Counted from the stretch's first letter, positions 276-37,715 are shown. The stretch: DNA of 64,000 bases from Auanema rhodensis (GCA_964057225.1 OZ059894.1:11284001-11348000), one strand, 5' to 3'. Notes: generated from the letters alone by a model not told the origin. Numbers and translations are program-made.

Positions 276-1089
276 ACAGTAAAAAGTCCAATCAAGAGAG
301 AAATTTTTTCAACACATAGTTGTTTTTTTTTAAAATATCATTGTTTTTCCTCATAACTCGGTTTAAACTCGTTCTAACCCGTTGAAATACGTCTAGAAAG
401 TCTTTATAACATGCATATGTATGATAGAACTTCATATTTATTGTAATAGAAAATTTTATTTTCAGACGTCTTGGTTAACAATGATATGTTTTACCCCCTT
501 ATAATTTTTATCATAATGTTCCTTATACGGAACGCTCAATGAAACTTGCTTCCAGAAAAATTTCTTTCTATTTGTTCTTCATATGTACGTAGATACTATA
601 GAGAACTATGATAGAAAACTTTAACATTCACGAAATCATCATTTCTCATTACGCTACGGAGGTTTAAAAAGCTGTGTTTTACTTTATAATAGACCGGAAA
701 ACCCTTGTGTTAAAACTGGACCGTTTTTACACATATAAAAATGTCCCGTATTCGGGACCCTAATGTAACTTTTGATTCCCTATATTTTTTTTCATGAAAT
801 TTACAATCTACTGTAGAAAGAAGAATTATTTTTATAAAAACTGTAAATTTTTGAAAAATGAAAACAAAACGAAAACAAAAACAACTTTTTTTTGAACATT
901 TTCTCACACAAGGGTCCCCCCTTACCTACTTTTTTTCTCATTACTCGTTTCAACCTCATCCGATCACTCTGCAAACATGTTTAATCGTTCTAACTTGTTG
1001 AAATACGTCTTAAAAGTCTAAACAACATGCATATGCATAATAGAAACCACCCGAATAGGCCCCCACGCACTAAACGAGATATATACATT

Positions 1090-1140
1090 ACCAGTATAGT
1101 AATAGAACACATATTGAAGATTAATTCGATAAGAACAATT
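1090..1140 (-). pseudogene. Decayed U2 fragment (nt 39-79) plus CTATACTGGT, present in the spacer of every unit (representative copy)
   Basis: 46/51 identity to 55228-55278; all 5 mismatches are C>T or G>A. Confidence 0.85.
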
Positions 1141-1457
1141 TATTGACGTAGAGAATGTTTGTTCCGAAAAACTACAATATTAAACTATAAAAGTAACAAA
1201 AGCGTAGAGGCAGCAAAGACATGAATAAACATAAATGTAAATACAGAATTACCAGGTAGTACATAAGTATGACAAAAAATTATAAGAAAGCCATGAAAAT
1301 AGAAGGTTTGTGAACAAATGAGAGGTACATCTTTGATCGTATAGTCATTTCTAAACCGTTCGTATGCTGCAGCATCGTCATAAGCGTCACTCAAGTTGAA
1401 TTTCCATGTGTACTACACGATTTTCATTCTTATTGTTACATTCTTTCCCTGAGGGAA

Positions 1458-1604
1458 TGGGCCGTTCCCGCCAGCAGTGCAAGAGCGGGTCGACCCGTGA
1501 GGTGGAGCTAGCAAGCCAGCATCTACCTCAAGTCTCAAAAATCGGTTAACCTTATTGTGAACCAATGGAACACATATCGAAGGTTAATTCGATAAGAACG
1601 ATTA
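1458..1604 (-). pseudogene. U2: U2 snRNA 3' part (nt 38-184) left after retrotransposon insertion
   Basis: Matches intact U2 up to ...gaacgatta, then switches to the element 3' end. Confidence 0.93.
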
Positions 1605-4600
1605 ATGGTTTATTGAATAACTAATGTTATGAAACAATAAATAACCAATAAAAAAGAGCCCAGAATCGGGGAGACGGTATTACCAGTACAACTTAAAACA
1701 GCAAGTGATTAAAAAGTACAAAATAAAACACATTACCAACAGAGGCTAAAACGACTCAAGAGTCGGGGGAGTGGGTTAAAAAAAGTAATGAATAACAAAA
1801 AAAATGAATAATAAAGCAGAACAGTGAAAAGTAAATATCAAGTGCCGCTATGATCAAACAATTTGAGTGCCTACGGCAATAGTGTTAAAAATAAAAAACA
1901 AAATACATGTACCAATGAAGGTCAGAAAGAGAGAAAGAAAAAAGACAAAAATAAGTAATACAAAAAGTAAAAAATATATTACAATCAAATCACAAACAAG
2001 TCAATGGATAATTTCTTCTTCATATTGCCTTACACCAGAAACATGTTCCACGTAGATATTCCTGGCCCACTTGATGGTATCGGCGACGACGAGCTTCTCC
2101 ATTAGCCGGTTGTAGTGGCTGCTGATCTTGAGTGATCGGAGGGCTTGTACGTTGAGCGGGTCCATAGTTCCAAGCATTCCTACGACATATGCTTCTACAC
2201 TAGTCTTATAACCAAGACATTGGTATTGGCTGGCTATGTCAGCATATTTCCTCTCCTTTATCATACGCGCGGCTATCATGGCTTGACGGCGGTTTTCATA
2301 GCTCACTGTAACATCAACGATACTACAGTGTTTTGCGTCATGATCGACCACTACTATGTCAGGTCGGAGTGTACTATTAATGCCAGGAAGAGGCTGGTTA
2401 GTGTAAACTTCTCCGTTTTTAGGCTCTGGCAGGGCTTTGATAAGACGGTCCACGATGTTGTTGTGGCGGAGTTGGATTGCTCTCGTGTGAGAGTGGCAGT
2501 GTCCAAGAACATGTGCAGCAGTTTCGTTGGAGTAACTACACCTGCGGCACTGTTTGTTTCCTTCTCCGTGTCTTCTACAGCCATTGAGCTGGAGAGTATT
2601 AAGTCGAGCCTTGTGGATGAATCGCCAATCAGCAAACCGTATGAAATCTCCCTTCGCCATAAAGTGATTGGACGCTTTGTTGAGCATTGTGACATCAAAG
2701 ACTTTCCCTTGATCCGGTTTTTGAAGAAGGATCCGAAGGTCTTTCAGCCATAATGCACGTCGCAGGCTTCTGTGGCATAGTGAAGGTGTTAACAGTTGGT
2801 TGTTTAGATTGAGTTCTAAACCACTTTCGAGGCATGTCCAGTTAGCGTTGATGAGTTTCTTGAGTTGACGCATCGCTACTCTTACTCTAGTCCAGATGGA
2901 GGAAACATCAGATGTTTCGGTGTCGAAAATGCCATCAACGGAACCGTTGTAATATGCAGCTGTCTCATCGTTACTGGCTTGACGTTTAATCCTTTTTGAT
3001 GCTACTTTTATTGAGTCTTGATGCGCAATATCAGCTACTACAAGATCAGATGACTTCAAAAGTTGGTAGGCATGAGTGACTTCACAGACGTCTGACAGGT
3101 GTTGGAGTCGAGAGAGACCAAGTCCGCCGTAGTTAGTTGGCAGGTAGATTGGTTCAGCACTGGCGTTTGGAGGATAGTGCATCCATCTACGGGCACAGCG
3201 TTTGAGTTCTTTGTCAAAGGCGACTAGTTTACTCTTTGGGACGTGGCCATTCGTCATATGAAAATTAAGGCAGGGCATCAGGAAGGTGCGTACTGCGTCA
3301 GCTTTCTGCCATTCAGCCAGTAAGGATTTGTCAATTTTTTCCAAGTGTTGACTCATGATATTCACTGTTGGAACCGCAGACTTATGTAAATGCATTCCAG
3401 TAGGGATTCCCAGGTGGGAGTAGCTGTCAAATTTGCTGAGAGCGGGTAGAAAGCAGCTCTGAAGCATGTATGAGGCTGTTGATATTTTCCCTTTGTCGAT
3501 CGTCAAAGTGGCGCATTTCGCTGGTTTGAAGGTCAAGCCTGTGAAATTAGCCGCATTTGATGCTGCGTCCAACATTTTCTGTAGATCTTCTGATGATGAG
3601 GAGACCAGGGCAAGGTCATCGGCGTACGCTAGCACAGCGATGTTGTGATTGTGTAGCTTATAGCCTGTAGAGGTTTCCAAGATGGTTTTAATTAGAGGTT
3701 CAATGGCAAGGTTGAACAGGATCGGAGATAGTGGGGATCCTTGTAACACACCTGCGTGAACTGGAATGGTCGAAGTGAGTCCGGAGCCTGTCTGGATTCT
3801 TGTAGAGGCATCTGTGTATAGAGCTCGTACTCGGGATATTGAGGCTTCAGCCATTCCTGACCATCTTAGAACGTCTAGCAGAGTTTCGTGTGGCAGCGAT
3901 CCAAAAGCGTTTGCGAGATCAAGCCAAGCAATTGCAATTTTCTCACGTTTACGTTTAGCGTCTGCAATGGTACTTTGCAACAAAAAGTTGTGTTCCATGC
4001 ATCCAGCTTTGGCCACAAAGCCCTTTTGGGAGGGAGAAAGTCTTTTTTCTGCTCTTGCCCATGTTAGCAGTCGATGCGTAAGACAAGCTGAGTACGTCTT
4101 ACCAATTGTGCACGAAAGTGCTATTGGTCGCCAGTTGTTAATGTCAGCTTTATCACCTTTCTTATGGATGAGGACGGTGGTCGACTCTTTCCAGGAAAAA
4201 GGGATGTGTCCTAGCTTGTGTACGGTGTTAAATATCGCTGCTAATATGTGACCTCCTTGGTCAAATTTCTTCCAGTGCGAGTATCGAAGTCCATCAGCTC
4301 CTGGAGCCGTATCGCTGCAACGTCGTATGCGTTCCCAGACTTCCAAAGGGGTGAAAACACCTTCTAATGGGTCGGTACTAGTTGGCAAATCCGGTCTGGT
4401 GACTGTGATGGGGAGGGCTGGGCCTTGACTGCTGTGAACAGAAAGGAAGTGTTTTTCAACATCTGCAGATGGTATGGTGCAGGTTTCACTTTGTTCTCCG
4501 AGCAGTTGTCGAAAGGCTTTCTTCTTGTTGGCCCTCCAAAGCTTCTGGATCTTCATCGCCTGGGTTTTTTGGTCTTCCTCAGGTTGTGTGTGTGGTCGGC

Positions 4601-5331
4601 GCCTTTGTCGGAAGTTGGGAACTTTGATCATAATGTCAAGAGACTTTCTGATTGTGTCTATCAACTCTTCCAGGACCTGCTCGAGCTCACTTTTGCACAC
4701 TACCTTTTTAATTCTATCCACCCAAATATTTTCAGAGTTTCTATTCGGATCAGGGTCGGCAAAAGATGGTTCTGTACTCGGAACCCTGATCTCGTTGAAT
4801 ATTTCACTCTCTCGCGGAAGGGGGGAAACTTCGGCCTCTGGGGACAAGTCCAGAATTGGGGCCTCAAACAAGCGTACCGTTGATGGAGATCCTTGTTCCT
4901 GTCCACTGGATGATGTTTCCTCCATTGTACGCTCCTCCACGGGCGGGGTGGTCGTCCTTGTGCCTGGTGGGCGGGTGTTCCTGATCCTCCGCAATATAGG
5001 GCGGGAACTGGGCTCTCTCGGAGATAGAGGTGAGATCACCACAGTTTCCTCTATGATGCGGAGGCATCCTTCAGCTTTTTTCTGATGGCTTTTAACGGCC
5101 TTCAGATTGCTGGTGAGGCCACAGGCACGGCACTCAAATTCTACTCCGACCTCATGTTCTCTCCGAAGATGGCGGACGAGACCATTGTGGTCTGAGTAGG
5201 ATCGCGGAATAGGAGCGCAGATTGAACAAGAAAAAGGGCTCTGAAGAGGCACCTTTAGCTTGTAAAGCCCTTGCTCCATCTCTAGCAGATCTAAAGACTT
5301 ACGTAGTACAGTTGCAATATCGATTTAGCCA
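1605..5331 (-). mobile_element. Full-length intact U2-targeting RLE non-LTR retrotransposon (Utopia-like), 3727 bp
   Basis: Single ORF with RT and RLE, 52-nt leader, 396-nt 3' UTR ending AATAAACCAT without poly(A); flanked by U2 sequence on both sides. Confidence 0.95.
2001..5279 (-). CDS. 1092-aa retrotransposon protein: C2H2 and C2HC zinc fingers, reverse transcriptase, CCHC knuckle, PD-(D/E)xK restriction-like endonuclease
   Basis: Motifs CSIC..HLRREH, CRAC..H..C, APGADG, WRPIAL, QKGF, WLDLANAFGS, GVLQGSPLSP, YADD, CRRC..HVLGHC, RHN, RPD..DVTV..K.KY. Confidence 0.96.
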   Translation of the reverse strand: MEQGLYKLKVPLQSPFSCSICAPIPRSYSDHNGLVRHLRREHEVGVEFECRACGLTSNLKAVKSHQKKAEGCLRIIEETVVISPLSPREPSSRPILRRIRNTRPPGTRTTTPPVEERTMEETSSSGQEQGSPSTVRLFEAPILDLSPEAEVSPLPRESEIFNEIRVPSTEPSFADPDPNRNSENIWVDRIKKVVCKSELEQVLEELIDTIRKSLDIMIKVPNFRQRRRPHTQPEEDQKTQAMKIQKLWRANKKKAFRQLLGEQSETCTIPSADVEKHFLSVHSSQGPALPITVTRPDLPTSTDPLEGVFTPLEVWERIRRCSDTAPGADGLRYSHWKKFDQGGHILAAIFNTVHKLGHIPFSWKESTTVLIHKKGDKADINNWRPIALSCTIGKTYSACLTHRLLTWARAEKRLSPSQKGFVAKAGCMEHNFLLQSTIADAKRKREKIAIAWLDLANAFGSLPHETLLDVLRWSGMAEASISRVRALYTDASTRIQTGSGLTSTIPVHAGVLQGSPLSPILFNLAIEPLIKTILETSTGYKLHNHNIAVLAYADDLALVSSSSEDLQKMLDAASNAANFTGLTFKPAKCATLTIDKGKISTASYMLQSCFLPALSKFDSYSHLGIPTGMHLHKSAVPTVNIMSQHLEKIDKSLLAEWQKADAVRTFLMPCLNFHMTNGHVPKSKLVAFDKELKRCARRWMHYPPNASAEPIYLPTNYGGLGLSRLQHLSDVCEVTHAYQLLKSSDLVVADIAHQDSIKVASKRIKRQASNDETAAYYNGSVDGIFDTETSDVSSIWTRVRVAMRQLKKLINANWTCLESGLELNLNNQLLTPSLCHRSLRRALWLKDLRILLQKPDQGKVFDVTMLNKASNHFMAKGDFIRFADWRFIHKARLNTLQLNGCRRHGEGNKQCRRCSYSNETAAHVLGHCHSHTRAIQLRHNNIVDRLIKALPEPKNGEVYTNQPLPGINSTLRPDIVVVDHDAKHCSIVDVTVSYENRRQAMIAARMIKERKYADIASQYQCLGYKTSVEAYVVGMLGTMDPLNVQALRSLKISSHYNRLMEKLVVADTIKWARNIYVEHVSGVRQYEEEIIH

Positions 5332-5426
5332 TTAACCTTATTGTGAACCAATGGAACACATATCGAAGGTTAATTCGATAAGAACGATTACTACACTTTG
5401 ATCTTAGCCAAAAGGCCGAGAAGCGA
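5332..5426 (-). pseudogene. U2: U2 nt 2-96 fused to the element 5' end, without the U2 promoter; abuts an A15 run (5426-5440)
   Basis: ttaaccttatt...gagaagcga, then A run, then spacer ctacaatatt. Confidence 0.92.
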
Positions 5427-5726
5427 AAAAAAAAAAAAAACTACAATATTAAACTATAAAAGTAACAAAAGCGTAGAGGCAGCAAAGACATGAATAAACA
5501 TAAATGTAAATACAGAATTACCAGGTAGTACATAAGTATGACAAAAAATTATAAGAAAGCCATGAAAATAGAAGGTTTGTGAACAAATGAGAGGTACATC
5601 TTTGATCGTATAGTCATTTCTAAACCGTTCGTATGCTGCAGCATCGTCATAAGCGTCACTCAAGTTGAATTTCCATGTGTACTACACGATTTTCATTCTT
5701 ATTGTTACATTCTTTCCCTGAGGGAA

Positions 5727-5910
5727 TGGGCCGTTCCCGCCAGCAGTGCAAGAGCGGGTCGACCCGTGAGGTGGAGCTAGCAAGCCAGCATCTACCTCAA
5801 GTCTCAAAAATCGGTTAACCTTATTGTGAACCAATGGAACACATATCGAAGGTTAATTCGATAAGAACGATTACTACACTTTGATCTTAGCCAAAAGGCC
5901 GAGAAGCGAT
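5727..5910 (-). ncRNA. U2: U2 snRNA gene
   Basis: ATCGCTTCTCGGCCTTTTGGCTAAGATCAAAGTGTAGTA start; stem IIa TATCGAA/TTCGATA with loop complement AAGGTTAA; Sm site ATTTTTG; stem IV with TTGCAC loop. 3' end approximate. Confidence 0.96.
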
Positions 5911-8393: not shown

Positions 8394-8836
8394 ACAGCAT
8401 AGCCATGAGTATCAAAGACATCAAGCAAATGTATCGTACTTGTTACGAGTGCACTCTCTCATTTGAATATAAAAGTGTGGTTTGACAATCTTGACTGTAC
8501 AGGTCATAAATGGCTCATATAAACTGTGGATTTACTCAACTTTTGGACTTATTTTTTTCTTATTCGAAGCGCTGCACTTTTTTCTATTCTTTTTATTCAA
8601 ATACTTGTATATAGTTTTATATGTACGGTTGCAAAGTTTCCGAATATTTTATATATTTTTATACAATAATTAGGAGAAGGTTAATACAATGAAATCTCCC
8701 AACTTTACAGTGTTTGTATTGCTTACAGTATCTAGAACAACCACTCTTGTAATATTAGAGCACATATCAATCAACAACTTTTTTTTAGTTATCAAAGCTT
8801 TTTTATTTCTTCAAAAAATTTCAAATAAAATATAAA

Positions 8837-8955
8837 AGCTTACGACACCCGGGATTCCCAAGCCGTCTCCGATCCAAGTACTAACCGGGCCCAACGTTGC
8901 TTGACTTGCCAGATCGGACGGGATGGCGTACTTTCAACGTGGTATGGTCGTAAGC
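8837..8955 (-). rRNA. 5S: 5S rRNA gene (unit with a single 5S)
   Basis: Same 119-mer; the 360-bp sub-repeat is collapsed. Confidence 0.97.
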
Positions 8956-9097
8956 AATGTCATATTCTTCATTATCAGTTATATCACTCTAAATCTTGTT
9001 GTTAATAGATACGACCACAAAGAAAACAACAGGAACAGTAACAATAACAAAAAAAATTTTTTTTTCACCTATGTGTCTAAAGGTTAGCCATGTATCC

Positions 9098-9161
<64 letters not shown>

Positions 9162-10343
9162 ACAGTAAAAAGTCCAATCAAGAGAGAAATTTTTTCAACA
9201 CATAGTTGTTTTTTTTTTAAATATCATTGTTTTTCCTCATAACTCGGTTTAAACTCGTTCTAACCCGTTGAAATACGTCTAGAAAGTCTTTATAACATGC
9301 ATATGTATGATAGAACTTCATATTTATTGTAATAGAAAATTTTATTTTCAGACGTCTTGGTTAACAATGATATGTTTTACCCCCTTATAATTTTTATCAT
9401 AATGTTCCTTATACGGAACGCTCAATGAAACTTGCTTCCAGAAAAATTTCTTTCTATTTTTTCTTCATATGTACGTAGATACTATAGAGAACTATGATAG
9501 AAAACTTTAACATTCACGAAATCATCATTTCTCATTACGCTACGGAGGTTTAAAAAGCTGTGTTTTACCTTATAATAGACCGGAAAACCCTTGTGTTAAA
9601 ACTGGACCGTTTTTACACATATAAAAATGTCCCGTATTCGGGACCCTAATGTAACTTTTGATTCCCTATATTTTTTTTCATGAAATTTACAATCTACTGT
9701 AGAAAGAAGAATTATTTTTATAAAAACTGTAAATTTTTGAAAAATGAAAACAAAACGAAAACAAAAACAACTTTTTTTTGAACATTTTCTCACACAAGGG
9801 TCCCCCCTTACCTACTTTTTTTCTCATTACTCGTTTCAACCTCATCCGATCACTCTGCAAACATGTTTAATCGTTCTAACTTGTTGAAATACGTCTTAAA
9901 AGTCTAAACAACATGCATATGCATAATAGAAACCACCCGAATAGGCCCCCACGCACTAAACGAGATATATACATTACCAGTATAGTAATAGAACACATAT
10001 TGAAGATTAATTCGATAAGAACAATTTATTGACGTAGAGAATGTTTGTTCCGAAAAACTACAATATTAAACTATAAAAGTAACAAAAGCGTAGAGGCAGC
10101 AAAGACATGAATAAACATAAATGTAAATACAGAATTACCAGGTAGTACATAAGTATGACAAAAAATTATAAGAAAGCCATGAAAATAGAAGGTTTGTGAA
10201 CAAATGAGAGGTACATCTTTGATCGTATAGTCATTTCTAAACCGTTCGTATGCTGCAGCATCGTCATAAGCGTCACTCAAGTTGAATTTCCATGTGTACT
10301 ACACGATTTTCATTCTTATTGTTACATTCTTTCCCTGAGGGAA

Positions 10344-10527
10344 TGGGCCGTTCCCGCCAGCAGTGCAAGAGCGGGTCGACCCGTGAGGTGGAGCTAGCAA
10401 GCCAGCATCTACCTCAAGTCTCAAAAATCGGTTAACCTTATTGTGAACCAATGGAACACATATCGAAGGTTAATTCGATAAGAACGATTACTACACTTTG
10501 ATCTTAGCCAAAAGGCCGAGAAGCGAT
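10344..10527 (-). ncRNA. U2: U2 snRNA gene
   Basis: Matches 5727-5910. Confidence 0.96.
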
Positions 10528-12987: not shown

Positions 12988-15706
12988 ATGGTTTATTGAA
13001 TAACTAATGTTATGAAACAATAAATAACCAATAAAAAAGAGCCCAGAATCGGGGAGACGGTATTACCAGTACAACTTAAAACAGCAAGTGATTAAAAAGT
13101 ACAAAATAAAACACATTACCAACAGAGGCTAAAACGACTCAAGAGTCGGGGGAGTGGGTTAAAAAAAGTAATGAATAACAAAAAAAATGAATAATAAAGC
13201 AGAACAGTGAAAAGTAAATATCAAGTGCCGCTATGATCAAACAATTTGAGTGCCTACGGCAATGGTGTTAAAAATAAACAACAAAATACATGTACCAATG
13301 AAGGTCAGAAAGAGAGAAAGAAAAAAGACAAAAATAAGTAATACAAAAAGTAAAAAATATATTACAATCAAATCACAAACAAGTCAATGGATAATTTCTT
13401 CTTCATACTGCCTTACACCAGAAACATGTTCCACGTAGATATTCCTGGCCCACTTGATGGTATCGGCGACGACGAGCTTCTCCATTAGCCGGTTGTAGTG
13501 GCTGCTGATCTTGAGTGATCGGAGGGCTTGTACGTTGAGCGGGTCCATAGTTCCAAGCATTCCTACGACATACGCTTCTACACTAGTCTTATAACCAAGA
13601 CATTGGTATTGGCTGGCTATGTCAGCATATTTCCTCTCCTTTATCATACGCGCGGCTATCATGGCTTGTCGGCGGTTTTCATAGCTCACTGTAACATCAA
13701 CGATACTACAGTGTTTTGCGTCATGATCGACCACTACTATGTCAGGTCGGAGTGTACTATTAATGCCAGGAAGAGGCTGGTTAGTGTAAACTTCTCCGTT
13801 TTTAGGCTCTGGCAGGGCTTTGATAAGACGGTCCACGATGTTGTTGTGGCGGAGTTGGATTGCTCTCGTGTGAAAGTGGCAGTGTCCAAGAACATGTGCA
13901 GCAGTTTCGTTGGGGTAACTACACCTGCGGCACTGTTTGTTTCCTTCTCCGTGTCTTCTACAGCCATTGAGCTGGAGAGTATTAAGTCGAGCCTTGTGGA
14001 TGAATCGCCAATCAGCAAACCGTATGAAATCTCCCTTCGCCATAAAGTGATTGGACGCTTTGTTGAGCATTGTGACATCAAAGACTTTCCCTTGATCCGG
14101 TTTTTGAAGAAGGATCCGAAGGTCTTTCAGCCATAATGCACGTCGCAGGCTTCTGTGGCATAGTGAAGGTGTTAACAGTTGGTTGTTTAGATTGAGTTCT
14201 AAACCACTTTCGAGGCATGTCCAGTTAGCGTTGATGAGTTTCTTGAGTTGACGCATCGCTACTCTTACTCTAGTCCAGATGGAGGAAACATCAGATGTTT
14301 CGGTGTCGAAAATGCCATCAACGGAACCGTTGTAATATGCAGCTGTCTCATCGTTACTGGCTTGACGTTTAATCCTTTTTGATGCTACTTTTATTGAGTC
14401 TTGATGCGCAATATCAGCTACTACAAGATCAGATGACTTCAAAAGTTGGTAGGCATGAGTGACTTCACAGACGTCTGACAGGTGTTGGAGTCGAGAGAGA
14501 CCAAGTCCGCCGTAGTTAGTTGGCAGGTAGATTGGTTCAGCACTGGCGTTTGGAGGATAGTGCATCCATCTACGGGCACAGCGTTTGAGTTCTTTGTCAA
14601 AGGCGACTAGTTTACTCTTTGGGACGTGGCCATTCGTCATATGAAAATTAAGGCAGGGCATCAGGAAGGTGCGTACTGCGTCAGCTTTCTGCCATTCAGC
14701 CAGTAAGGATTTGTCAATTTTTTCCAAGTGTTGACTCATGATATTCACTGTTGGAACCGCAGACTTATGTAAATGCATTCCAGTAGGGATTCCCAGGTGG
14801 GAGTAGCTGTCAAATTTGCTGAGAGCGGGTAGAAAGCAGCTCTGAAGCATGTATGAGGCTGTTGATATTTTCCCTTTGTCGATCGTCAAAGTGGCGCATT
14901 TCGCTGGTTTGAAGGTCAAGCCTGTGAAATTAGCCGCATTTGATGCTGCGTCCAACATTTTCTGTAGATCTTCTGATGATGAGGAGACCAGGGCAAGGTC
15001 ATCGGCGTACGCTAGCACAGCGATGTTGTGATTGTGTAGCTTATAGCCTGTAGAGGTTTCCAAGATGGTTTTAATTAGAGGTTCAATGGCAAGGTTGAAC
15101 AGGATCGGAGATAGTGGGGATCCTTGTAACACACCTGCGTGAACTGGAATGGTCGAAGTGAGTCCGGAGCCTGTCTGGATTCTTGTAGAGGCATCTGTGT
15201 ATAGAGCTCGTACTCGGGATATTGAGGCTTCAGCCATTCCTGACCATCTTAGAACGTCTAGCAGAGTTTCGTGTGGCAGCGATCCAAAAGCGTTTGCGAG
15301 ATCAAGCCAAGCAATTGCAATTTTCTCACGTTTACGTTTAGCGTCTGCAATGGTACTTTGCAACAAAAAGTTGTGTTCCATGCATCCAGCTTTGGCCACA
15401 AAGCCCTTTTGGGAGGGAGAAAGTCTTTTTTCTGCTCTTGCCCATGTTAGCAGTCGATGCGTAAGACAAGCTGAGTACGTCTTACCAATTGTGCACGAAA
15501 GTGCTATTGGTCGCCAGTTGTTAATGTCAGCTTTATCACCTTTCTTATGGATGAGGACGGTGGTCGACTCTTTCCAGGAAAAAGGGATGTGTCCTAGCTT
15601 GTGTACGGTGTTAAATATCGCTGCTAATATGTGACCTCCTTGGTCAAATTTCTTCCAGTGCGAGTATCGAAGTCCATCAGCTCCTGGAGCCGTATCGCTG
15701 CAACGT
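12988..15706 (-). mobile_element. 5'-truncated Utopia-like copy (2.7 kb)
   Basis: Colinear with 1605-4323; ends at ...gctgcaacgt. Confidence 0.94.
13384..15706 (-). pseudogene. Truncated RT-RLE coding region lacking the N-terminus
   Basis: ORF track 13384-15399 matches the C-terminal 671 aa. Confidence 0.9.
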
Positions 15707-15767
15707 AGTAATCGTTCTTATCGAATTAACCTTCGATATGTGTTCCATTGGTTCACAATAAGGTTAA
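15705..15767 (+). pseudogene. U2: U2 nt 34-96 heading the inverted element
   Basis: gtagtaatcgttc...aaggttaa, then tggctaaatcg. Confidence 0.9.
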
Positions 15768-18700
15768 TGGCTAAATCGATATTGCAACTGTACTACGTAA
15801 GTCTTTAGATCTGCTAGAGATGGAGCAAGGGCTTTACAAGCTAAAGGTGCCTCTTCAGAGCCCTTTTTCTTGTTCAATCTGCGCTCCTATTCCGCGATCC
15901 TACTCAGACCACAATGGTCTCGTCCGCCATCTTCGGAGAGAACATGAGGTCGGAGTAGAATTTGAGTGCCGTGCCTGTGGCCTCACCAGCAATCTGAAGG
16001 CCGTTAAAAGCCATCAGAAAAAAGCTGAAGGATGCCTCCGCATCATAGAGGAAACTGTGGTGATCTCACCTCTATCTCCGAGAGAGCCCAGTTCCCGCCC
16101 TATATTGCGGAGGATCAGGAACACCCGCCCACCAGGCACAAGGACGACCACCCCGCCCGTGGAGGAGCGTACAATGGAGGAAACATCATCCAGTGGACAG
16201 GAACAAGGATCTCCATCAACGGTACGCTTGTTTGAGGCCCCAATTCTGGACTTGTCCCCAGAGGCCGAAGTTTCCCCCCTTCCGCGAGAGAGTGAAATAT
16301 TCAACGAGATCAGGGTTCCGAGTACAGAACCATCTTTTGCCGACCCTGATCCGAATAGAAACTCTGAAAATATTTGGGTGGATAGAATTAAAAAGGTAGT
16401 GTGCAAAAGTGAGCTCGAGCAGGTCCTGGAAGAGTTGATAGACACAATCAGAAAGTCTCTTGACATTATGATCAAAGTTCCCAACTTCCGACAAAGGCGC
16501 CGACCACACACACAACCTGAGGAAGACCAAAAAACCCAGGCGATGAAGATCCAGAAGCTTTGGAGGGCCAACAAGAAGAAAGCCTTTCGACAACTGCTCG
16601 GAGAACAAAGTGAAACCTGCACCATACCATCTGCAGATGTTGAAAAACACTTCCTTTCTGTTCACAGCAGTCAAGGCCCAGCCCTCCCCATCACAGTCAC
16701 CAGACCGGATTTGCCAACTAGTACCGACCCATTAGAAGGTGTTTTCACCCCTTTGGAAGTCTGGGAACGCATACGACGTTGCAGCGATACGGCTCCAGGA
16801 GCTGATGGACTTCGATACTCGCACTGGAAGAAATTTGACCAAGGAGGTCACATATTAGCAGCGATATTTAACACCGTACACAAGCTAGGACACATCCCTT
16901 TTTCCTGGAAAGAGTCGACCACCGTCCTCATCCATAAGAAAGGTGATAAAGCTGACATTAACAACTGGCGACCAATAGCACTTTCGTGCACAATTGGTAA
17001 GACGTACTCAGCTTGTCTTACGCATCGACTGCTAACATGGGCAAGAGCAGAAAAAAGACTTTCTCCCTCCCAAAAGGGCTTTGTGGCCAAAGCTGGATGC
17101 ATGGAACACAACTTTTTGTTGCAAAGTACCATTGCAGACGCTAAACGTAAACGTGAGAAAATTGCAATTGCTTGGCTTGATCTCGCAAACGCTTTTGGAT
17201 CGCTGCCACACGAAACTCTGCTAGACGTTCTAAGATGGTCAGGAATGGCTGAAGCCTCAATATCCCGAGTACGAGCTCTATACACAGATGCCTCTACAAG
17301 AATCCAGACAGGCTCCGGACTCACTTCGACCATTCCAGTTCACGCAGGTGTGTTACAAGGATCCCCACTATCTCCGATCCTGTTCAACCTTGCCATTGAA
17401 CCTCTAATTAAAACCATCTTGGAAACCTCTACAGGCTATAAGCTACACAATCACAACATCGCTGTGCTAGCGTACGCCGATGACCTTGCCCTGGTCTCCT
17501 CATCATCAGAAGATCTACAGAAAATGTTGGACGCAGCATCAAATGCGGCTAATTTCACAGGCTTGACCTTCAAACCAGCGAAATGCGCCACTTTGACGAT
17601 CGACAAAGGGAAAATATCAACAGCCTCATACATGCTTCAGAGCTGCTTTCTACCCGCTCTCAGCAAATTTGACAGCTACTCCCACCTGGGAATCCCTACT
17701 GGAATGCATTTACATAAGTCTGCGGTTCCAACAGTGAATATCATGAGTCAACACTTGGAAAAAATTGACAAATCCTTACTGGCTGAATGGCAGAAAGCTG
17801 ACGCAGTACGCACCTTCCTGATGCCCTGCCTTAATTTTCATATGACGAATGGCCACGTCCCAAAGGGAAAGTCTTTGATGTCACAATGCTCAACAAAGCG
17901 TCCAATCACTTTATGGCGAAGGGAGATTTCATACGGTTTGCTGATTGGCGATTCATCCACAAGGCTCGACTTAATACTCTCCAGCTCAATGGCTGTAGAA
18001 GACACGGAGAAGGAAACAAACAGTGCCGCAGGTGTAGTTACCCCAACGAAACTGCTGCACATGTTCTTGGACACTGCCACTTTCACACGAGAGCAATCCA
18101 ACTCCGCCACAACAACATCGTGGACCGTCTTATCAAAGCCCTGCCAGAGCCTAAAAACGGAGAAGTTTACACTAACCAGCCTCTTCCTGGCATTAATAGT
18201 ACACTCCGACCTGACATAGTAGTGGTCGATCATGACGCAAAACACTGTAGTATCGTTGATGTTACAGTGAGCTATGAAAACCGCCGACAAGCCATGATAG
18301 CCGCGCGTATGATAAAGGAGAGGAAATATGCTGACATAGCCAGCCAATACCAATGTCTTGGTTATAAGACTAGTGTAGAAGCGTATGTCGTAGGAATGCT
18401 TGGAACTATGGACCCGCTCAACGTACAAGCCCTCCGATCACTCAAGATCAGCAGCCACTACAACCGGCTAATGGAGAAGCTCGTCGTCGCCGATACCATC
18501 AAGTGGGCCAGGAATATCTACGTGGAACATGTTTCTGGTGTAAGGCAGTATGAAGAAGAAATTATCCATTGACTTGTTTGTGATTTGATTGTAATATATT
18601 TTTTACTTTTTGTATTACTTATTTTTGTCTTTTTTCTTTCTCTCTTTCTGACCTTCATTGGTACATGTATTTTGTTTTTTATTTTTAACACTATTGCCGT

Positions 18701-18968
18701 AGGCACTCAAATTGTTTGATCATAGCGGCACTTGATATTTACTTTTCACTGTTCTGCTTTATTATTCATTTTTTTTGTTATTCATTACTTTTTTTAACCC
18801 ACTCCCCCGACTCTTGAGTCGTTTTAGCCTCTGTTGGTAATGTGTTTTATTTTGTACTTTTTAATCACTTGCTGTTTTAAGTTGTACTGGTAATACCGTC
18901 TCCCCGATTCTGGGCTCTTTTTTATTGGTTATTTATTGTATCATAACATTAGTTATTCAATAAACCAT
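15768..18968 (+). mobile_element. Utopia-like copy with both ends intact and a 526-bp internal deletion
   Basis: Junction cccaaag/ggaaagtc near 17865 with AAG microhomology. Confidence 0.94.
15820..18572 (+). pseudogene. Frameshifted retrotransposon ORF
   Basis: ORFs 15820-18219 and 17886-18572; 2753 nt versus 3279 nt in the intact copy. Confidence 0.92.
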
Positions 18969-19115
18969 TAATCGTTCTTATCGAATTAACCTTCGATATG
19001 TGTTCCATTGGTTCACAATAAGGTTAACCGATTTTTGAGACTTGAGGTAGATGCTGGCTTGCTAGCTCCACCTCACGGGTCGACCCGCTCTTGCACTGCT
19101 GGCGGGAACGGCCCA
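18969..19115 (+). pseudogene. U2: U2 3' part (nt 38-184), inverted
   Basis: aataaaccat/taatcgttctt junction. Confidence 0.93.
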
Positions 19116-20293
19116 TTCCCTCAGGGAAAGAATGTAACAATAAGAATGAAAATCGTGTAGTACACATGGAAATTCAACTTGAGTGACGCTTATGACGATG
19201 CTGCAGCATACGAACGGTTTAGAAATGACTATACGATCAAAGATGTACCTCTCATTTGTTCACAAACCTTCTATTTTCATGGCTTTCTTATAATTTTTTG
19301 TCATACTTATGTACTACCTGGTAATTCTGTATTTACATTTATGTTTATTCATGTCTTTGCTGCCTCTACGCTTTTGTTACTTTTATAGTTTAATATTGTA
19401 GTTTTTCGGAACAAACATTCTCTACGTCAATAAATTGTTCTTATCGAATTAATCTTCAATATGTGTTCTATTACTATACTGGTAATGTATATATCTCGTT
19501 TAGTGCGTGGGGGCCTATTCGGGTGGTTTCTATTATGCATATGCATGTTGTTTAGACTTTTAAGACGTATTTCAACAAGTTAGAACGATTAAACATGTTT
19601 GCAGAGTGATCGGATGAGGTTGAAACGAGTAATGAGAAAAAAAGTAGGTAAGGGGGGACCCTTGTGTGAGAAAATGTTCAAAAAAAAGTTGTTTTTGTTT
19701 TCGTTTTGTTTTCATTTTTCAAAAATTTACAGTTTTTATAAAAATAATTCTTCTTTCTACAGTAGATTGTAAATTTCATGAAAAAAAATATAGGGAATCA
19801 AAAGTTACATTAGGGTCCCGAATACGGGACATTTTTATATGTGTAAAAACGGTCCAGTTTTAACACAAGGGTTTTCCGGTCTATTATAAGGTAAAACACA
19901 GCTTTTTAAACCTCCGTAGCGTAATGAGAAATGATGATTTCGTGAATGTTAAAGTTTTCTATCATAGTTCTCTATAGTATCTACGTACATATGAAGAAAA
20001 AATAGAAAGAAATTTTTCTGGAAGCAAGTTTCATTGAGCGTTCCGTATAAGGAACATTATGATAAAAATTATAAGGGGGTAAAACATATCATTGTTAACC
20101 AAGACGTCTGAAAATAAAATCAACAACAGGAACAGTAACAAATGAAATGCCCAAACTTTACAGTGTTCGAGTTATTTACAGTATCTAAGACTACCTCTGT
20201 CGTGTTATTAGAGCAAACATTCGATTAACAACAACTTTTTTTTAGTTATCAAAGCTTTTTTATTTCTTCAAAAAATTTCAAATAAAATATAAA

Positions 20294-29364: not shown

Positions 29365-31339
29365 ATGGTTTATTGAATAACTAATGTTATGAAACAATAA
29401 ATAACCAATAAAAAAGAGCCCAGAATCGGGGAGACGGTATTACCAGTACAACTTAAAACAGCAAGTGATTAAAAAGTACAAAATAAAACACATTACCAAC
29501 AGAGGCTAAAACGACTCAAGAGTCGGGGGAGTGGGTTAAAAAAAGTAATGAATAACAAAAAAAATGAATAATAAAGCAGAACAGTGAAAAGTAAATATCA
29601 AGTGCCGCTATGATCAAACAATTTGAGTGCCTACGGCAATAGTGTTAAAAATAAAAAACAAAATACATGTACCAATGAAGGTCAGAAAGAGAGAAAGAAA
29701 AAAGACAAAAATAAGTAATACAAAAAGTAAAAAATATATTACAATCAAATCACAAACAAGTCAATGGATAATTTCTTCTTCATACTGCCTTACACCAGAA
29801 ACATGTTCCACGTAGATATTCCTGGCCCACTTGATGGTATCGGCGACGACGAGCTTCTCCATTAGCCGGTTGTAGTGGCTGCTGATCTTGAGTGATCGGA
29901 GGGCTTGTACGTTGAGCGGGTCCATAGTTCCAAGCATTCCTACGACATACGCTTCTACACTAGTCTTATAACCAAGACATTGGTATTGGCTGGCTATGTC
30001 AGCATATTTCCTCTCCTTTATCATACGCGCGGCTATCATGGCTTGTCGGCGGTTTTCATAGCTCACTGTAACATCAACGATACTACAGTGTTTTGCGTCA
30101 TGATCGACCACTACTATGTCAGGTCGGAGTGTACTATTAATGCCAGGAAGAGGCTGGTTAGTGTAAACTTCTCCGTTTTTAGGCTCTGGCAGGGCTTTGA
30201 TAAGACGGTCCACGATGTTGTTGTGGCGGAGTTGGATTGCTCTCGTGTGAAAGTGGCAGTGTCCAAGAACATGTGCAGCAGTTTCGTTGGGGTAACTACA
30301 CCTGCGGCACTGTTTGTTTCCTTCTCCGTGTCTTCTACAGCCATTGAGCTGGAGAGTATTAAGTCGAGCCTTGTGGATGAATCGCCAATCAGCAAACCGT
30401 ATGAAATCTCCCTTCGCCATAAAGTGATTGGACGCTTTGTTGAGCATTGTGACATCAAAGACTTTCCCTTGATCCGGTTTTTGAAGAAGGATCCGAAGGT
30501 CTTTCAGCCATAATGCACGTCGCAGGCTTCTGTGGCATAGTGAAGGTGTTAACAGTTGGTTGTTTAGATTGAGTTCTAAACCACTTTCGAGGCATGTCCA
30601 GTTAGCGTTGATGAGTTTCTTGAGTTGACGCATCGCTACTCTTACTCTAGTCCAGATGGAGGAAACATCAGATGTTTCGGTGTCGAAAATGCCATCAACG
30701 GAACCGTTGTAATATGCAGCTGTCTCATCGTTACTGGCTTGACGTTTAATCCTTTTTGATGCTACTTTTATTGAGTCTTGATGCGCAATATCAGCTACTA
30801 CAAGATCAGATGACTTCAAAAGTTGGTAGGCATGAGTGACTTCACAGACGTCTGACAGGTGTTGGAGTCGAGAGAGACCAAGTCCGCCGTAGTTAGTTGG
30901 CAGGTAGATTGGTTCAGCACTGGCGTTTGGAGGATAGTGCATCCATCTACGGGCACAGCGTTTGAGTTCTTTGTCAAAGGCGACTAGTTTACTCTTTGGG
31001 ACGTGGCCATTCGTCATATGAAAATTAAGGCAGGGCATCAGGAAGGTGCGTACTGCGTCAGCTTTCTGCCATTCAGCCAGTAAGGATTTGTCAATTTTTT
31101 CCAAGTGTTGACTCATGATATTCACTGTTGGAACCGCAGACTTATGTAAATGCATTCCAGTAGGGATTCCCAGGTGGGAGTAGCTGTCAAATTTGCTGAG
31201 AGCGGGTAGAAAGCAGCTCTGAAGCATGTATGAGGCTGTTGATATTTTCCCTTTGTCGATCGTCAAAGTGGCGCATTTCGCTGGTTTGAAGGTCAAGCCT
31301 GTGAAATTAGCCGCATTTGATGCTGCGTCCAACATTTTC
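29365..31339 (-). mobile_element. 5'-truncated Utopia-like copy (1975 bp; ORF remnant 29761-31339, YADD absent)
   Basis: Ends aacattttc/acggagg, fused to spacer. Confidence 0.94.
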
Positions 31340-32140
31340 ACGGAGGTTTAAAAAGCTGTGTTTTACCTTATAATAGACCGGAAAACCCTTGTGTTAAAAC
31401 TGGACCGTTTTTACACATATAAAAATGTCCCGTATTCGGGACCCTAATGTAACTTTTGATTCCCTATATTTTTTTCATGAAATTTACAATCTACTGTAGA
31501 AAGAAGAATTATTTTTATAAAAACTGTAAATTTTTGAAAAATGAAAACAAAACGAAAACAAAAACAACTTTTTTTTGAACATTTTCTCACACAAGGGTCC
31601 CCCCTTACCTACTTTTTTTCTCATTACTCGTTTCAACCTCATCCGATCACTCTGCAAACATGTTTAATCGTTCTAACTTGTTGAAATACGTCTTAAAAGT
31701 CTAAACAACATGCATATGCATAATAGAAACCACCCGAATAGGCCCCCACGCACTAAACGAGATATATACATTACCAGTATAGTAATAGAACACATATTGA
31801 AGATTAATTCGATAAGAACAATTTATTGACGTAGAGAATGTTTGTTCCGAAAAACTACAATATTAAACTATAAAAGTAACAAAAGCGTAGAGGCAGCAAA
31901 GACATGAATAAACATAAATGTAAATACAGAATTACCAGGTAGTACATAAGTATGACAAAAAATTATAAGAAAGCCATGAAAATAGAAGGTTTGTGAACAA
32001 ATGAGAGGTACATCTTTGATCGTATAGTCATTTCTAAACCGTTCGTATGCTGCAGCATCGTCATAAGCGTCACTCAAGTTGAATTTCCATGTGTACTACA
32101 CGATTTTCATTCTTATTGTTACATTCTTTCCCTGAGGGAA

Positions 32141-32324
32141 TGGGCCGTTCCCGCCAGCAGTGCAAGAGCGGGTCGACCCGTGAGGTGGAGCTAGCAAGCC
32201 AGCATCTACCTCAAGTCTCAAAAATCGGTTAACCTTATTGTGAACCAATGGAACACATATCGAAGGTTAATTCGATAAGAACGATTACTACACTTTGATC
32301 TTAGCCAAAAGGCCGAGAAGCGAT
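32141..32324 (-). ncRNA. U2: U2 snRNA gene
   Basis: Matches 5727-5910. Confidence 0.96.
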
Positions 32325-32766
32325 ACAGCATAGCCATGAGTATCAAAGACATCAAGCAAATGTATCGTACTTGTTACGAGTGCACTCTCTCATTTGAATA
32401 TAAAAGTGTGGTTTGACAATCTTGACTGTACAGGTCATAAATGGCTCATATAAACTGTGGATTTACTCAACTTTTGGACTTATTTTTTTCTTATTCGAAG
32501 CGCTGCACTTTTTTCTATTCTTTTTATTCAAATACTTGTATATAGTTTTATATGTACGGTTGCAAAGTTTCCGAATATTTTATATATTTTTATACAATAA
32601 TTAGGAGAAGGTTAATACAATGAAATCTCCCAACTTTACAGTGTTTGTATTGCTTACAGTATCTAGAACAACCACTCTTGTAATATTAGAGCACATATCA
32701 ATCAACAACTTTTTCTAGTTATCAAAGCTTTTTTATTTCTTCAAGATATTTCAAATAAAATATAAA

Positions 32767-32885
32767 AGCTTACGACACCCGGGATTCCCAAGCCGTCTCC
32801 GATCCAAGTACTAACCGGGCCCAACGTTGCTTGACTTGCCAGATCGGACGGGATGGCGTACTTTCAACGTGGTATGGTCGTAAGC
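32767..32885 (-). rRNA. 5S: 5S rRNA gene
   Basis: Same 119-mer. Confidence 0.97.
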
Positions 32886-33126
32886 AATGTTATATTCTTC
32901 ATTATCAGTTATATCACTCTAAATCTTGTTGTTAATAGTTAGGACCACAAAGAAAACAACAGGAACAGTAACAAATGAAATGCCCAAACTTTACAGTGTT
33001 CGAGTTATTTACAGTATCTAAGACTACCTCTGTCGTGTTATTAGAGCAAACATTCGATTAACAACAACTTTTTTTTAGTTATCAAAGCTTTTTTATTTCT
33101 TCAAAAAATTTCAAATAAAATATAAA

Positions 33127-33245
33127 AGCTTACGACACCCGGGATTCCCAAGCCGTCTCCGATCCAAGTACTAACCGGGCCCAACGTTGCTTGACTTGCC
33201 AGATCGGACGGGATGGCGTACTTTCAACGTGGTATGGTCGTAAGC
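33127..33245 (-). rRNA. 5S: 5S rRNA gene
   Basis: Same 119-mer. Confidence 0.97.
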
Positions 33246-33387
33246 AATGTCATATTCTTCATTATCAGTTATATCACTCTAAATCTTGTTGTTAATAGAT
33301 ACGACCACAAAGAAAACAACAGGAACAGTAACAATAACAAAAAAAATTTTTTTTTCACCTATGTGTCTAAAGGTTAGCCATGTATCC

Positions 33388-33463
<76 letters not shown>

Positions 33464-34645
33464 ACAGTAAAAAGTCCAATCAAGAGAGAAATTTTTTCAA
33501 CACATAGTTGTTTTTTTTTTAAATATCATTGTTTTTCCTCATAACTCGGTTTAAACTCGTTCTAACCCGTTGAAATACGTCTAGAAAGTCTTTATAACAT
33601 GCATATGTATGATAGAACTTCATATTTATTGTAATAGAAAATTTTATTTTCAGACGTCTTGGTTAACAATGATATGTTTTACCCCCTTATAATTTTTATC
33701 ATAATGTTCCTTATACGGAACGCTCAATGAAACTTGCTTCCAGAAAAATTTCTTTCTATTTTTTCTTCATATGTACGTAGATACTATAGAGAACTATGAT
33801 AGAAAACTTTAACATTCACGAAATCATCATTTCTCATTACGCTACGGAGGTTTAAAAAGCTGTGTTTTACCTTATAATAGACCGGAAAACCCTTGTGTTA
33901 AAACTGGACCGTTTTTACACATATAAAAATGTCCCGTATTCGGGACCCTAATGTAACTTTTGATTCCCTATATTTTTTTTCATGAAATTTACAATCTACT
34001 GTAGAAAGAAGAATTATTTTTATAAAAACTGTAAATTTTTGAAAAATGAAAACAAAACGAAAACAAAAACAACTTTTTTTTGAACATTTTCTCACACAAG
34101 GGTCCCCCCTTACCTACTTTTTTTCTCATTACTCGTTTCAACCTCATCCGATCACTCTGCAAACATGTTTAATCGTTCTAACTTGTTGAAATACGTCTTA
34201 AAAGTCTAAACAACATGCATATGCATAATAGAAACCACCCGAATAGGCCCCCACGCACTAAACGAGATATATACATTACCAGTATAGTAATAGAACACAT
34301 ATTGAAGATTAATTCGATAAGAACAATTTATTGACGTAGAGAATGTTTGTTCCGAAAAACTACAATATTAAACTATAAAAGTAACAAAAGCGTAGAGGCA
34401 GCAAAGACATGAATAAACATAAATGTAAATACAGAATTACCAGGTAGTACATAAGTATGACAAAAAATTATAAGAAAGCCATGAAAATAGAAGGTTTGTG
34501 AACAAATGAGAGGTACATCTTTGATCGTATAGTCATTTCTAAACCGTTCGTATGCTGCAGCATCGTCATAAGCGTCACTCAAGTTGAATTTCCATGTGTA
34601 CTACACGATTTTCATTCTTATTGTTACATTCTTTCCCTGAGGGAA

Positions 34646-34792
34646 TGGGCCGTTCCCGCCAGCAGTGCAAGAGCGGGTCGACCCGTGAGGTGGAGCTAGC
34701 AAGCCAGCATCTACCTCAAGTCTCAAAAATCGGTTAACCTTATTGTGAACCAATGGAACACATATCGAAGGTTAATTCGATAAGAACGATTA
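34646..34792 (-). pseudogene. U2: U2 3' part (nt 38-184), interrupted
   Basis: Same 3' junction. Confidence 0.93.
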
Positions 34793-36767
34793 ATGGTTTA
34801 TTGAATAACTAATGTTATGAAACAATAAATAACCAATAAAAAAGAGCCCAGAATCGGGGAGACGGTATTACCAGTACAACTTAAAACAGCAAGTGATTAA
34901 AAAGTACAAAATAAAACACATTACCAACAGAGGCTAAAACGACTCAAGAGTCGGGGGAGTGGGTTAAAAAAAGTAATGAATAACAAAAAAAATGAATAAT
35001 AAAGCAGAACAGTGAAAAGTAAATATCAAGTGCCGCTATGATCAAACAATTTGAGTGCCTACGGCAATAGTGTTAAAAATAAAAAACAAAATACATGTAC
35101 CAATGAAGGTCAGAAAGAGAGAAAGAAAAAAGACAAAAATAAGTAATACAAAAAGTAAAAAATATATTACAATCAAATCACAAACAAGTCAATGGATAAT
35201 TTCTTCTTCATACTGCCTTACACCAGAAACATGTTCCACGTAGATATTCCTGGCCCACTTGATGGTATCGGCGACGACGAGCTTCTCCATTAGCCGGTTG
35301 TAGTGGCTGCTGATCTTGAGTGATCGGAGGGCTTGTACGTTGAGCGGGTCCATAGTTCCAAGCATTCCTACGACATACGCTTCTACACTAGTCTTATAAC
35401 CAAGACATTGGTATTGGCTGGCTATGTCAGCATATTTCCTCTCCTTTATCATACGCGCGGCTATCATGGCTTGTCGGCGGTTTTCATAGCTCACTGTAAC
35501 ATCAACGATACTACAGTGTTTTGCGTCATGATCGACCACTACTATGTCAGGTCGGAGTGTACTATTAATGCCAGGAAGAGGCTGGTTAGTGTAAACTTCT
35601 CCGTTTTTAGGCTCTGGCAGGGCTTTGATAAGACGGTCCACGATGTTGTTGTGGCGGAGTTGGATTGCTCTCGTGTGAAAGTGGCAGTGTCCAAGAACAT
35701 GTGCAGCAGTTTCGTTGGGGTAACTACACCTGCGGCACTGTTTGTTTCCTTCTCCGTGTCTTCTACAGCCATTGAGCTGGAGAGTATTAAGTCGAGCCTT
35801 GTGGATGAATCGCCAATCAGCAAACCGTATGAAATCTCCCTTCGCCATAAAGTGATTGGACGCTTTGTTGAGCATTGTGACATCAAAGACTTTCCCTTGA
35901 TCCGGTTTTTGAAGAAGGATCCGAAGGTCTTTCAGCCATAATGCACGTCGCAGGCTTCTGTGGCATAGTGAAGGTGTTAACAGTTGGTTGTTTAGATTGA
36001 GTTCTAAACCACTTTCGAGGCATGTCCAGTTAGCGTTGATGAGTTTCTTGAGTTGACGCATCGCTACTCTTACTCTAGTCCAGATGGAGGAAACATCAGA
36101 TGTTTCGGTGTCGAAAATGCCATCAACGGAACCGTTGTAATATGCAGCTGTCTCATCGTTACTGGCTTGACGTTTAATCCTTTTTGATGCTACTTTTATT
36201 GAGTCTTGATGCGCAATATCAGCTACTACAAGATCAGATGACTTCAAAAGTTGGTAGGCATGAGTGACTTCACAGACGTCTGACAGGTGTTGGAGTCGAG
36301 AGAGACCAAGTCCGCCGTAGTTAGTTGGCAGGTAGATTGGTTCAGCACTGGCGTTTGGAGGATAGTGCATCCATCTACGGGCACAGCGTTTGAGTTCTTT
36401 GTCAAAGGCGACTAGTTTACTCTTTGGGACGTGGCCATTCGTCATATGAAAATTAAGGCAGGGCATCAGGAAGGTGCGTACTGCGTCAGCTTTCTGCCAT
36501 TCAGCCAGTAAGGATTTGTCAATTTTTTCCAAGTGTTGACTCATGATATTCACTGTTGGAACCGCAGACTTATGTAAATGCATTCCAGTAGGGATTCCCA
36601 GGTGGGAGTAGCTGTCAAATTTGCTGAGAGCGGGTAGAAAGCAGCTCTGAAGCATGTATGAGGCTGTTGATATTTTCCCTTTGTCGATCGTCAAAGTGGC
36701 GCATTTCGCTGGTTTGAAGGTCAAGCCTGTGAAATTAGCCGCATTTGATGCTGCGTCCAACATTTTC
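34793..36767 (-). mobile_element. 5'-truncated Utopia-like copy, same truncation as 29365-31339
   Basis: Identical junction and 526-aa ORF remnant. Confidence 0.94.
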
Positions 36768-37568: not shown

Positions 37569-37715
37569 TGGGCCGTTCCCGCCAGCAGTGCAAGAGCGGG
37601 TCGACCCGTGAGGTGGAGCTAGCAAGCCAGCATCTACCTCAAGTCTCAAAAATCGGTTAACCTTATTGTGAACCAATGGAACACATATCGAAGGTTAATT
37701 CGATAAGAACGATTA
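37569..37715 (-). pseudogene. U2: U2 3' part (nt 38-184), interrupted
   Basis: Same 3' junction. Confidence 0.93.

Follow-up and report, generated by a model that had tools for sequence, protein, structure and literature searches.

The retrotransposon termed element E in this study, which has a length of 3,727 bp, interrupts U2 snRNA genes of a tandem array, and the U2 sequence in front of its 5'-intact copies always ends at the same nucleotide, nt 96. We consider it on balance probable that E uses the promoter of the U2 gene it has entered for its transcription, and that a head comprising U2 nt 1-96 is carried by the resulting RNA and forms the 5' junction of new inserts by annealing.

The window, that is the whole stretch of 64 kb that was analysed, represents a minus-strand tandem array with a repeat unit of 2,477 bp, within which a single U2 snRNA gene is accompanied by two genes for 5S rRNA. 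Searching the window with Rfam models yielded 14 intact U2 genes on the minus strand, each with a score of 148 bits, along with numerous 5S genes, and a BLAST comparison of one reference unit with the window revealed that the array units are 99-100% identical to one another. Junctions were mapped by BLAST of this reference unit and of element E against the window. In the Rfam alignment, an additional A was noted near nt 31 of the array U2. Nucleotides 89-96 of this U2 (AAGGTTAA) represent the complement of the loop of stem-loop IIa (nt 55-62), and the Sm site (A100-G106) starts 3 nt past nt 96. Some variation was observed among the units: the one located at 8394-10527 is 2,134 bp long and contains one 5S gene rather than two, and a dinucleotide repeat at unit position 1369-1411 differs in length from unit to unit.

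The best copy of E (copy 1) occupies positions 5331-1605 on the minus strand. It is composed of a 5' UTR of 52 nt (5280-5331), an intact ORF encoding a protein of 1,092 amino acids (2001-5279) and a 3' UTR of 396 nt without a poly(A) tail (1605-2000), the last 179 nt of which are common to a second, non-coding element referred to here as the rider. The deduced protein comprises N-terminal zinc fingers, a reverse transcriptase domain (Pfam RVT_1 at residues 371-593) and, at the C terminus, a CCHC motif of the form C-x2-C-x8-H-x4-C that is followed by RPD...DV...K, the PD-(D/E)xK signature of a restriction-like endonuclease (RLE). Both C-terminal motifs were recognized in the translation and are conserved in an alignment of 15 sequences. 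An APE domain was not found in the ORF by Pfam, which returned no match to Exo_endo_phos. The solved structures closest to the E protein are those of R2 proteins (3.5e-67), and its closest relatives in the database were found in scorpion, bark beetle (Dendroctonus), Daphnia, turtles and nematodes, the ORF being absent from the contig collection searched.

As judged from its sequence, E appears to have neither a detectable promoter nor a detectable ribozyme of its own. A self-cleaving ribozyme had been listed by an earlier, sequence-only reading of this DNA among the features that would speak against a U2-driven chimeric RNA. In the interval 1605-5390 no Rfam family apart from the U2 head was detected at E <= 5, and divergent HDV-like folds can escape the Rfam models used for this search. 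The 5' UTR includes the motif UACUAC, the complement of the branch-point-binding GUAGUA of U2, and in the predicted fold of U2 nt 34-96 together with the first 70 nt of E these two motifs pair with each other and a helix of the IIc type forms. With a z-score of -2.36 and 4 of 200 shuffled sequences folding as well, this modelled structure is suggestive only; the rider cannot form it. An origin of the 5' UTR as a decayed U2 fragment was considered and rejected, the local alignment score being at the level of shuffled sequences (p = 0.33). The segment 5280-5300 (minus strand) contains the sequence UCUUUAG|A, located 13 nt before the ATG of the ORF, which resembles a nematode 3' splice or trans-splice acceptor, with the motif GUAAGU just upstream. 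Spliced-leader trans-splicing in the 5' UTR, if it occurred, would strip the U2 head from the mRNA form of the element and leave it on the template form.

BLAST placed the 5' junction between U2 nt 96 and E nt 1 in each of the three 5'-intact copies of the window, namely at 5332/5331 (copy 1, minus strand), 15767/15768 (copy 2, plus strand) and 54261/54260 (copy 3, minus strand). At the opposite side, E nt 3727 adjoins U2 nt 38 at all eight element 3' ends in the window (1604/1605, 12987/12988, 18968/18969, 29364/29365, 34792/34793, 37715/37716, 50550/50551 and 54319/54320). The junction coordinates given in the sequence-only reading, with nt 96 on the 5' side and nt 38 on the 3' side, thus proved to be exact, and the 59-bp duplication of nt 38-96 that it had described is borne out by these counts. 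Moreover, its placement of the cut directly behind the strand complementary to loop IIa and 3 nt before the Sm site agrees with the positions of nt 89-96 and A100-G106. Since nt 38-39 of this U2 are TA, the 3' junction can be written as 37/38 or as 39/40. Owing to the extra A near nt 31, the latter position corresponds to the canonical Utopia/Keno site; the junction of E is therefore identical with that site if the TA is derived from the element and lies 2 nt upstream of it otherwise.

Copy 1 is followed by U2 nt 38-190 (1452-1604, minus strand). Copy 2 (15768-18968, plus strand) is present in inverted orientation and has an internal deletion of E nt 2099-2621; its head (15705-15767, plus strand) extends from about U2 nt 34-36 to nt 96 and abuts an inverted, 5'-truncated E. 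Copy 3 (50551-54260, minus strand) is 98.5% identical to copy 1, its ORF being split into parts of 852 and 228 amino acids, and its head (U2 nt 38-96; 54261-54319, minus strand) forms the linker between the tail of the rider and copy 3. The earlier claim that an uncut target remains upstream of the element therefore applies to copy 1 but not to copy 2, with its head from about nt 34-36 next to an inverted E, nor to copy 3, with its head from nt 38 next to the rider. With respect to diagnostic substitutions, the three full-length copies fall into at least three sequence lineages, so that independent insertion is plausible, though unproven. The heads of E do not differ from the host U2 (100% identity) and consequently offer no diagnostic variants that could prove inheritance through RNA. 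None of the three full-length copies in the window is located directly behind a U2 promoter, and the master copies would therefore reside elsewhere.

The upstream side of copy 1 carries a junction at the start site of U2. By BLAST and by reading of the sequence, the head of this copy (5332-5426, minus strand) was identified as U2 nt 2-96 with 100% identity to the array U2. The span 5280-5426 given in the sequence-only reading thus comprises the 5' UTR (5280-5331) in addition to the head (5332-5426), and U2 nt 1 is missing. Further upstream, positions 5436-5910 (minus strand) contain an intact U2 gene (5910-5721) and 285 nt of its downstream spacer, which match unit positions 1-475 at 100% in the BLAST comparison. 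The sequence upstream of copy 1 is hence that of the preceding unit up to spacer position 475, and about 2 kb, including both 5S genes, the U2 promoter and U2 nt 1, are missing. Comparison of the units revealed nine extra T residues (A on the plus strand; 5427-5435) between the T5 of the spacer itself (5436-5440, unit position 471-475) and U2 nt 2. The T-run before the head of copy 1 amounts to T15, compared with T5 in all 20 of the other units of the window. We read the nine extra T residues as untemplated A residues at the 3' end of a cDNA or as the result of slippage. The junction would then represent the footprint of a full-length cDNA that was copied from a template with its 5' end at the U2 start site and was linked to a remote T-run through microhomology. 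According to a rough estimate, a random breakpoint lies no more than 1 nt from the U2 start at about 3 of about 2,040 positions, corresponding to a chance of about 0.15%. Copy 1 provides the only start-site junction in the window.

The rider (54320-55237, minus strand) is 918 nt long and consists of 739 nt of non-coding sequence and the 179-nt tail, which is 98.9% identical to the 3' end of E. It is preceded by a head of U2 nt 1-79 (55238-55316, minus strand) that follows the native upstream region of the gene, its 5' junction being located at nt 79 and not at nt 96. An intact target site is contained in this head (U2 nt 1-79, 55316-55238). Since the last 179 nt are shared at such a high level of identity, the rider is probably served by the protein of E, and since it joins U2 at nt 79 despite the shared tail, the length of the head tracks the element and not the enzyme. 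A fossil of the nt-79 junction was detected in every unit of the array; the example at 1101-1160 (minus strand) is composed of a decayed 3' end of the element type, U2-like nt 41-79 and the start of the rider sequence. In front of copy 3, the elements are stacked in the order U2(1-79)-rider-U2(38-96)-copy 3, an arrangement that fits the self-regenerating target envisaged in the sequence-only reading.

Truncated elements and rearrangements of the array were mapped by the same BLAST comparisons. A 5'-truncated E comprising nt 1753-3727 (29365-31339, minus strand) meets spacer position 986 in a blunt joint and lacks U2 on its upstream side, and this junction is repeated at 34793-36767 and at 37716-39690. 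Since the spacer-986 junction is identical at three places, it goes back to one event that was amplified as DNA. The region 29365-40675 constitutes a higher-order repeat of about 2.9 kb that is present three times with identical junctions, each copy consisting of the truncated E (nt 1753-3727) and unit positions 38-986; here, a dead insert has been amplified as DNA by the array. Another 5'-truncated E (about nt 1008-3727; 12988-15708, minus strand) has the normal 3' junction at U2 nt 38. An inverted segment of 4.4 kb is located at 15705-20121 and contains copy 2 as well as the sequence from U2 nt 38 to spacer position 1189. At its left end, the truncated E (about nt 1008) is joined to U2 nt 34-36, near the cleavage site, and at its right end unit position 1189 (plus) is joined to unit position 1847 (minus). 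The inverted segment may have arisen by a complex rearrangement or may be an error of the assembly, and the break at U2 nt 34-36 would fit a top-strand cleavage near the bottom-strand nick. A 13-nt homology at the inverted junction of copy 2 was rejected as an over-extension by BLAST, the real overlap being 2-4 nt.

Heads resembling U2 are also present in relatives of E from other organisms. A first scan of metagenomes with the single E protein as query resulted in no match, and a second scan with an alignment as query delivered 80 loci, among which U2 was found only in L004, L006, L008 and L013. In Rfam scans, these four loci proved to have conserved 5' ends of U2. The short flanks of L001 and L002, the nearest relatives at the protein level (55-56% identity), contained no U2. 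Locus L008 (1-7307) originates from a freshwater metagenome and is situated within a mixed cluster of small-RNA genes (U2, U1, tRNA, U4, U5 and 5S). The L008 element shares 31% amino acid identity with E and has its 3' junction at the canonical U2 site. Its 5' side is arranged in the order host U2 nt 1-56 (100%), a 10-nt filler that matches U2 nt 9-18 exactly, a U2-like head with 86% identity to the host U2 that starts from nt 1, and the element itself, and the target duplication comprises 18 bp (U2 nt 39-56). In L006, further degenerate copies resembling U2(2-48) are located in the 5' UTR. Diverged heads with U2 nt 1 as their first nucleotide must have been passed on as part of the element. 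U2 sequence from canonical nt 39 flanks L004, L006 and L008 and also L083 and L084, two loci of scorpion (Centruroides) relatives. The scorpion loci contain tandem elements with a constant 21-nt U2(39-59) linker (L083, 1373-2120 and 6409-6429; L084, 2148-2168 and 6327-6347), which is compatible with a second nick as well as with an RNA-borne head. Most of the scorpion linkers share one A-to-G variant (GCTTGAT), which suggests either co-transfer of the linker with the element or insertion of elements into linkers already in place.

In the mechanism that we propose, transcription of E would be driven from outside, by the promoter of the U2 gene that it interrupts, yielding an RNA that starts at U2 +1 and has U2 nt 1-96 as its leader. 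In an intact U2 gene, the E protein would nick the bottom strand at 37/38 (or 39/40), the nick would prime reverse transcription at the 3' end of E, and the cDNA would be extended to the U2 start site. The U2-complementary end of this cDNA would pair with target nt 1-37, upstream of the nick, where the top strand could prime the synthesis of the second strand. The result would be a uniform junction, with nt 38-96 being copied into each new insert, and the copied segment would rebuild both a usable target and a promoter-proximal leader ahead of E. If annealing failed, the cDNA end would be joined elsewhere, as may have occurred in copy 1. The junction positions, the aberrant start-site junction, the head lengths specific to each family and the heads of the relatives are observations, whereas the U2-E transcript, the annealing step and a contribution of either the cap or the absent Sm site are inferred. 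The U2(1-96)-element chimera that had been predicted by the sequence-only reading, starting at the U2 start and carrying a head that aids the 5' junction, gains indirect support from the nt 2 junction of copy 1 with its nine T residues and 2-kb deletion, from the rider, and from L008 and L006. The accompanying term promoter capture is a misnomer, as the head contains no promoter and the external promoter of the interrupted gene would be borrowed instead. What was said about an m7G cap, export and the avoidance of Sm assembly by the E RNA is speculation. A search for sequencing runs yielded four small, low-share runs, none of them recorded as RNA. Promoters of the snRNA type are normally coupled to short transcripts with Integrator-dependent 3' ends, and an E transcript of 3.8 kb would therefore be unusual.

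A canonical insertion looks alike whether the head is carried by the RNA or generated by a second nick, so that only aberrant or comparative cases discriminate between these models. With a second nick, the duplication would be a true long target-site duplication, produced by nicks at 37/38 on the bottom strand and 96/97 on the top strand, with the target serving as template for nt 38-96 at each insertion and the retrotransposed RNA lacking the head. Target duplications can reportedly be very long, a value of 126 bp being quoted for the rotifer element R9, and the constancy of the junctions on both sides of E and of the 21-nt U2(39-59) linker in the scorpion relatives would be accounted for. 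In reptile Utopia elements, duplications that measure about 20 bp and are specific to the family have likewise been interpreted as the outcome of staggered nicks (PMC4640811). However, a duplication of the R9 type would be the same in all inserts of one enzyme, whereas the rider, which has the same tail and presumably uses the same protein, duplicates U2 only to nt 79, and two independent 5'-truncated inserts (31339 and about 15708) have no U2-to-nt-96 sequence upstream. A second nick would also leave unexplained why the head of copy 1 begins at U2 nt 2 beside foreign sequence and extra T residues, and the L008 head is diverged from the host U2 and located behind a separate 18-bp target duplication. 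Because of the start-site footprint of copy 1, the differing head of the rider and the diverged head of L008, a head carried by the RNA is favoured over a fixed second nick, and a staggered cleavage of this kind is regarded as unlikely.

Descent at the DNA level only, in which one old insertion was spread by unequal crossing-over and gene conversion and its contexts were rearranged later, is regarded as quite unlikely. The array provides the means for such a process, as indicated by the threefold occurrence of the truncated E at spacer position 986 with identical junctions, by the 99-100% identity of the units and by the inverted segment, which points to active rearrangement. The copies of E differ, however, in lineage-specific substitutions and in their truncation points, and the presence of one intact ORF indicates recent retrotransposition. 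Moreover, a breakpoint at the U2 start combined with untemplated T residues is a signature of the RNA type, and relatives in other organisms share the same architecture. Very improbable is a template switch in which the reverse transcriptase passed from the 5' end of the E RNA to U2 snRNA, comparable to U6/L1 chimeras and to the switch proposed as the origin of the snRNA heads of SINEU (PMC4494074), that was fixed once and involves no co-transcription: the short U2 fillers and the stacked degenerate heads of L008 and L006 do look like repeated 5' additions, but a switch onto mature U2 is expected to begin at its 3' end rather than at nt 96, head and target are exactly colinear, the head lengths of E and the rider differ in an orderly way, and the transcription of a promoterless element would be left unexplained.

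According to its architecture and target, E can be assigned to Utopia, a group of U2 snRNA gene-specific, RLE-encoding non-LTR retrotransposons (Kojima & Jurka 2015, PMC4640811). Like Utopia elements, E has a single ORF with zinc fingers, RT, CCHC motif and RLE and no APE domain, shows a precise 3' junction at the Utopia/Keno site, where the downstream U2 starts from canonical nt 39 (with an ambiguity of 2 nt in the case of E), and forms occasional tandem inserts. The top homologues of E come from Dendroctonus, Daphnia and turtles, which are listed hosts of Utopia (PMC4640811), a correspondence judged from the hosts. The 5' duplications of Utopia, with none in arthropods and 20 bp in reptiles, were treated as the result of staggered cleavage, and transcription was not discussed (PMC4640811). 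E is distinguished from the published Utopia elements by the upstream U2 sequence that reaches nt 96 (59 bp), by the start-site footprint and by the non-coding rider with a U2(1-79) head. All three of these features are new for the Utopia family.

By comparison of the known systems, the closest precedent for the proposed strategy of E is R2. Uniform 5' junctions arise via heteroduplex formation when R2 RNAs retain upstream 28S sequence (Eickbush et al. 2013, PMC3774820), and in earwig R2 all copies begin with 22 bp of downstream 28S, which was explained as an aberrant junction propagated through RNA (PMC3774820). Precise junctions formed by annealing and imprecise, end-joined ones have both been shown experimentally (PMC11331408). 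R2 resembles E, as proposed here, in being a promoterless RLE element that is co-transcribed with its target and in combining a target-derived leader with cDNA annealing and the propagation of aberrant junctions through RNA. The two systems differ in that the 5' end of the R2 RNA is released by an HDV-like ribozyme from a Pol I transcript, whereas no ribozyme was detected in E with Rfam and its 5' end is apparently the Pol II snRNA start; in addition, the 96-nt leader of E would be an entire structured domain of an snRNA. The principle of riding on the transcript of the target gene is thus already known from R2, and presumably it is realized in SLACS as well. SLACS and CZAR, which reside in the spliced-leader RNA genes of trypanosomatids, are said to have a 49-bp target duplication and transcripts starting from the host +1. 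We take them to be, like E, RLE elements within a small Pol II-transcribed RNA gene, but of another clade, with another target and with two ORFs. With respect to the rider, the SINEU families are SINEs with U1/U2-derived heads that reflect recurrent 5' addition of snRNA sequence (Kojima 2015, PMC4494074). They share their non-autonomous nature and snRNA-derived 5' heads with the rider and with the stacked heads of L006 and L008. In contrast to the rider, which has a tail of the Utopia type and is located in U2 genes, SINEU are polyadenylated, dispersed and linked to Tx1-type (APE) elements.

It is conceivable, though rather doubtful, that the 5' domain of U2 was selected as a capped and structured leader that replaces the ribozyme fold of R2. 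Such a leader would end before the Sm site so that the RNA is not packaged into an snRNP, and its GUAGUA would be masked by the UACUAC of E; the rider would then be the first SINE-like rider on an external Pol II snRNA promoter. More generally, the data on E would extend the R2 principle, in which a promoterless element on the transcript of its target uses a target-derived leader to form a clean 5' junction, to a Pol II snRNA gene. They also offer an alternative reading of the family-specific target-site duplications of Utopia, and copy 1 may serve as a natural record of a full-length cDNA end with untemplated nucleotides. For RNA-templated gene insertion, the combination of a structured snRNA domain with target homology would represent a natural 5' module that is unlike the ribozyme folds in present use.
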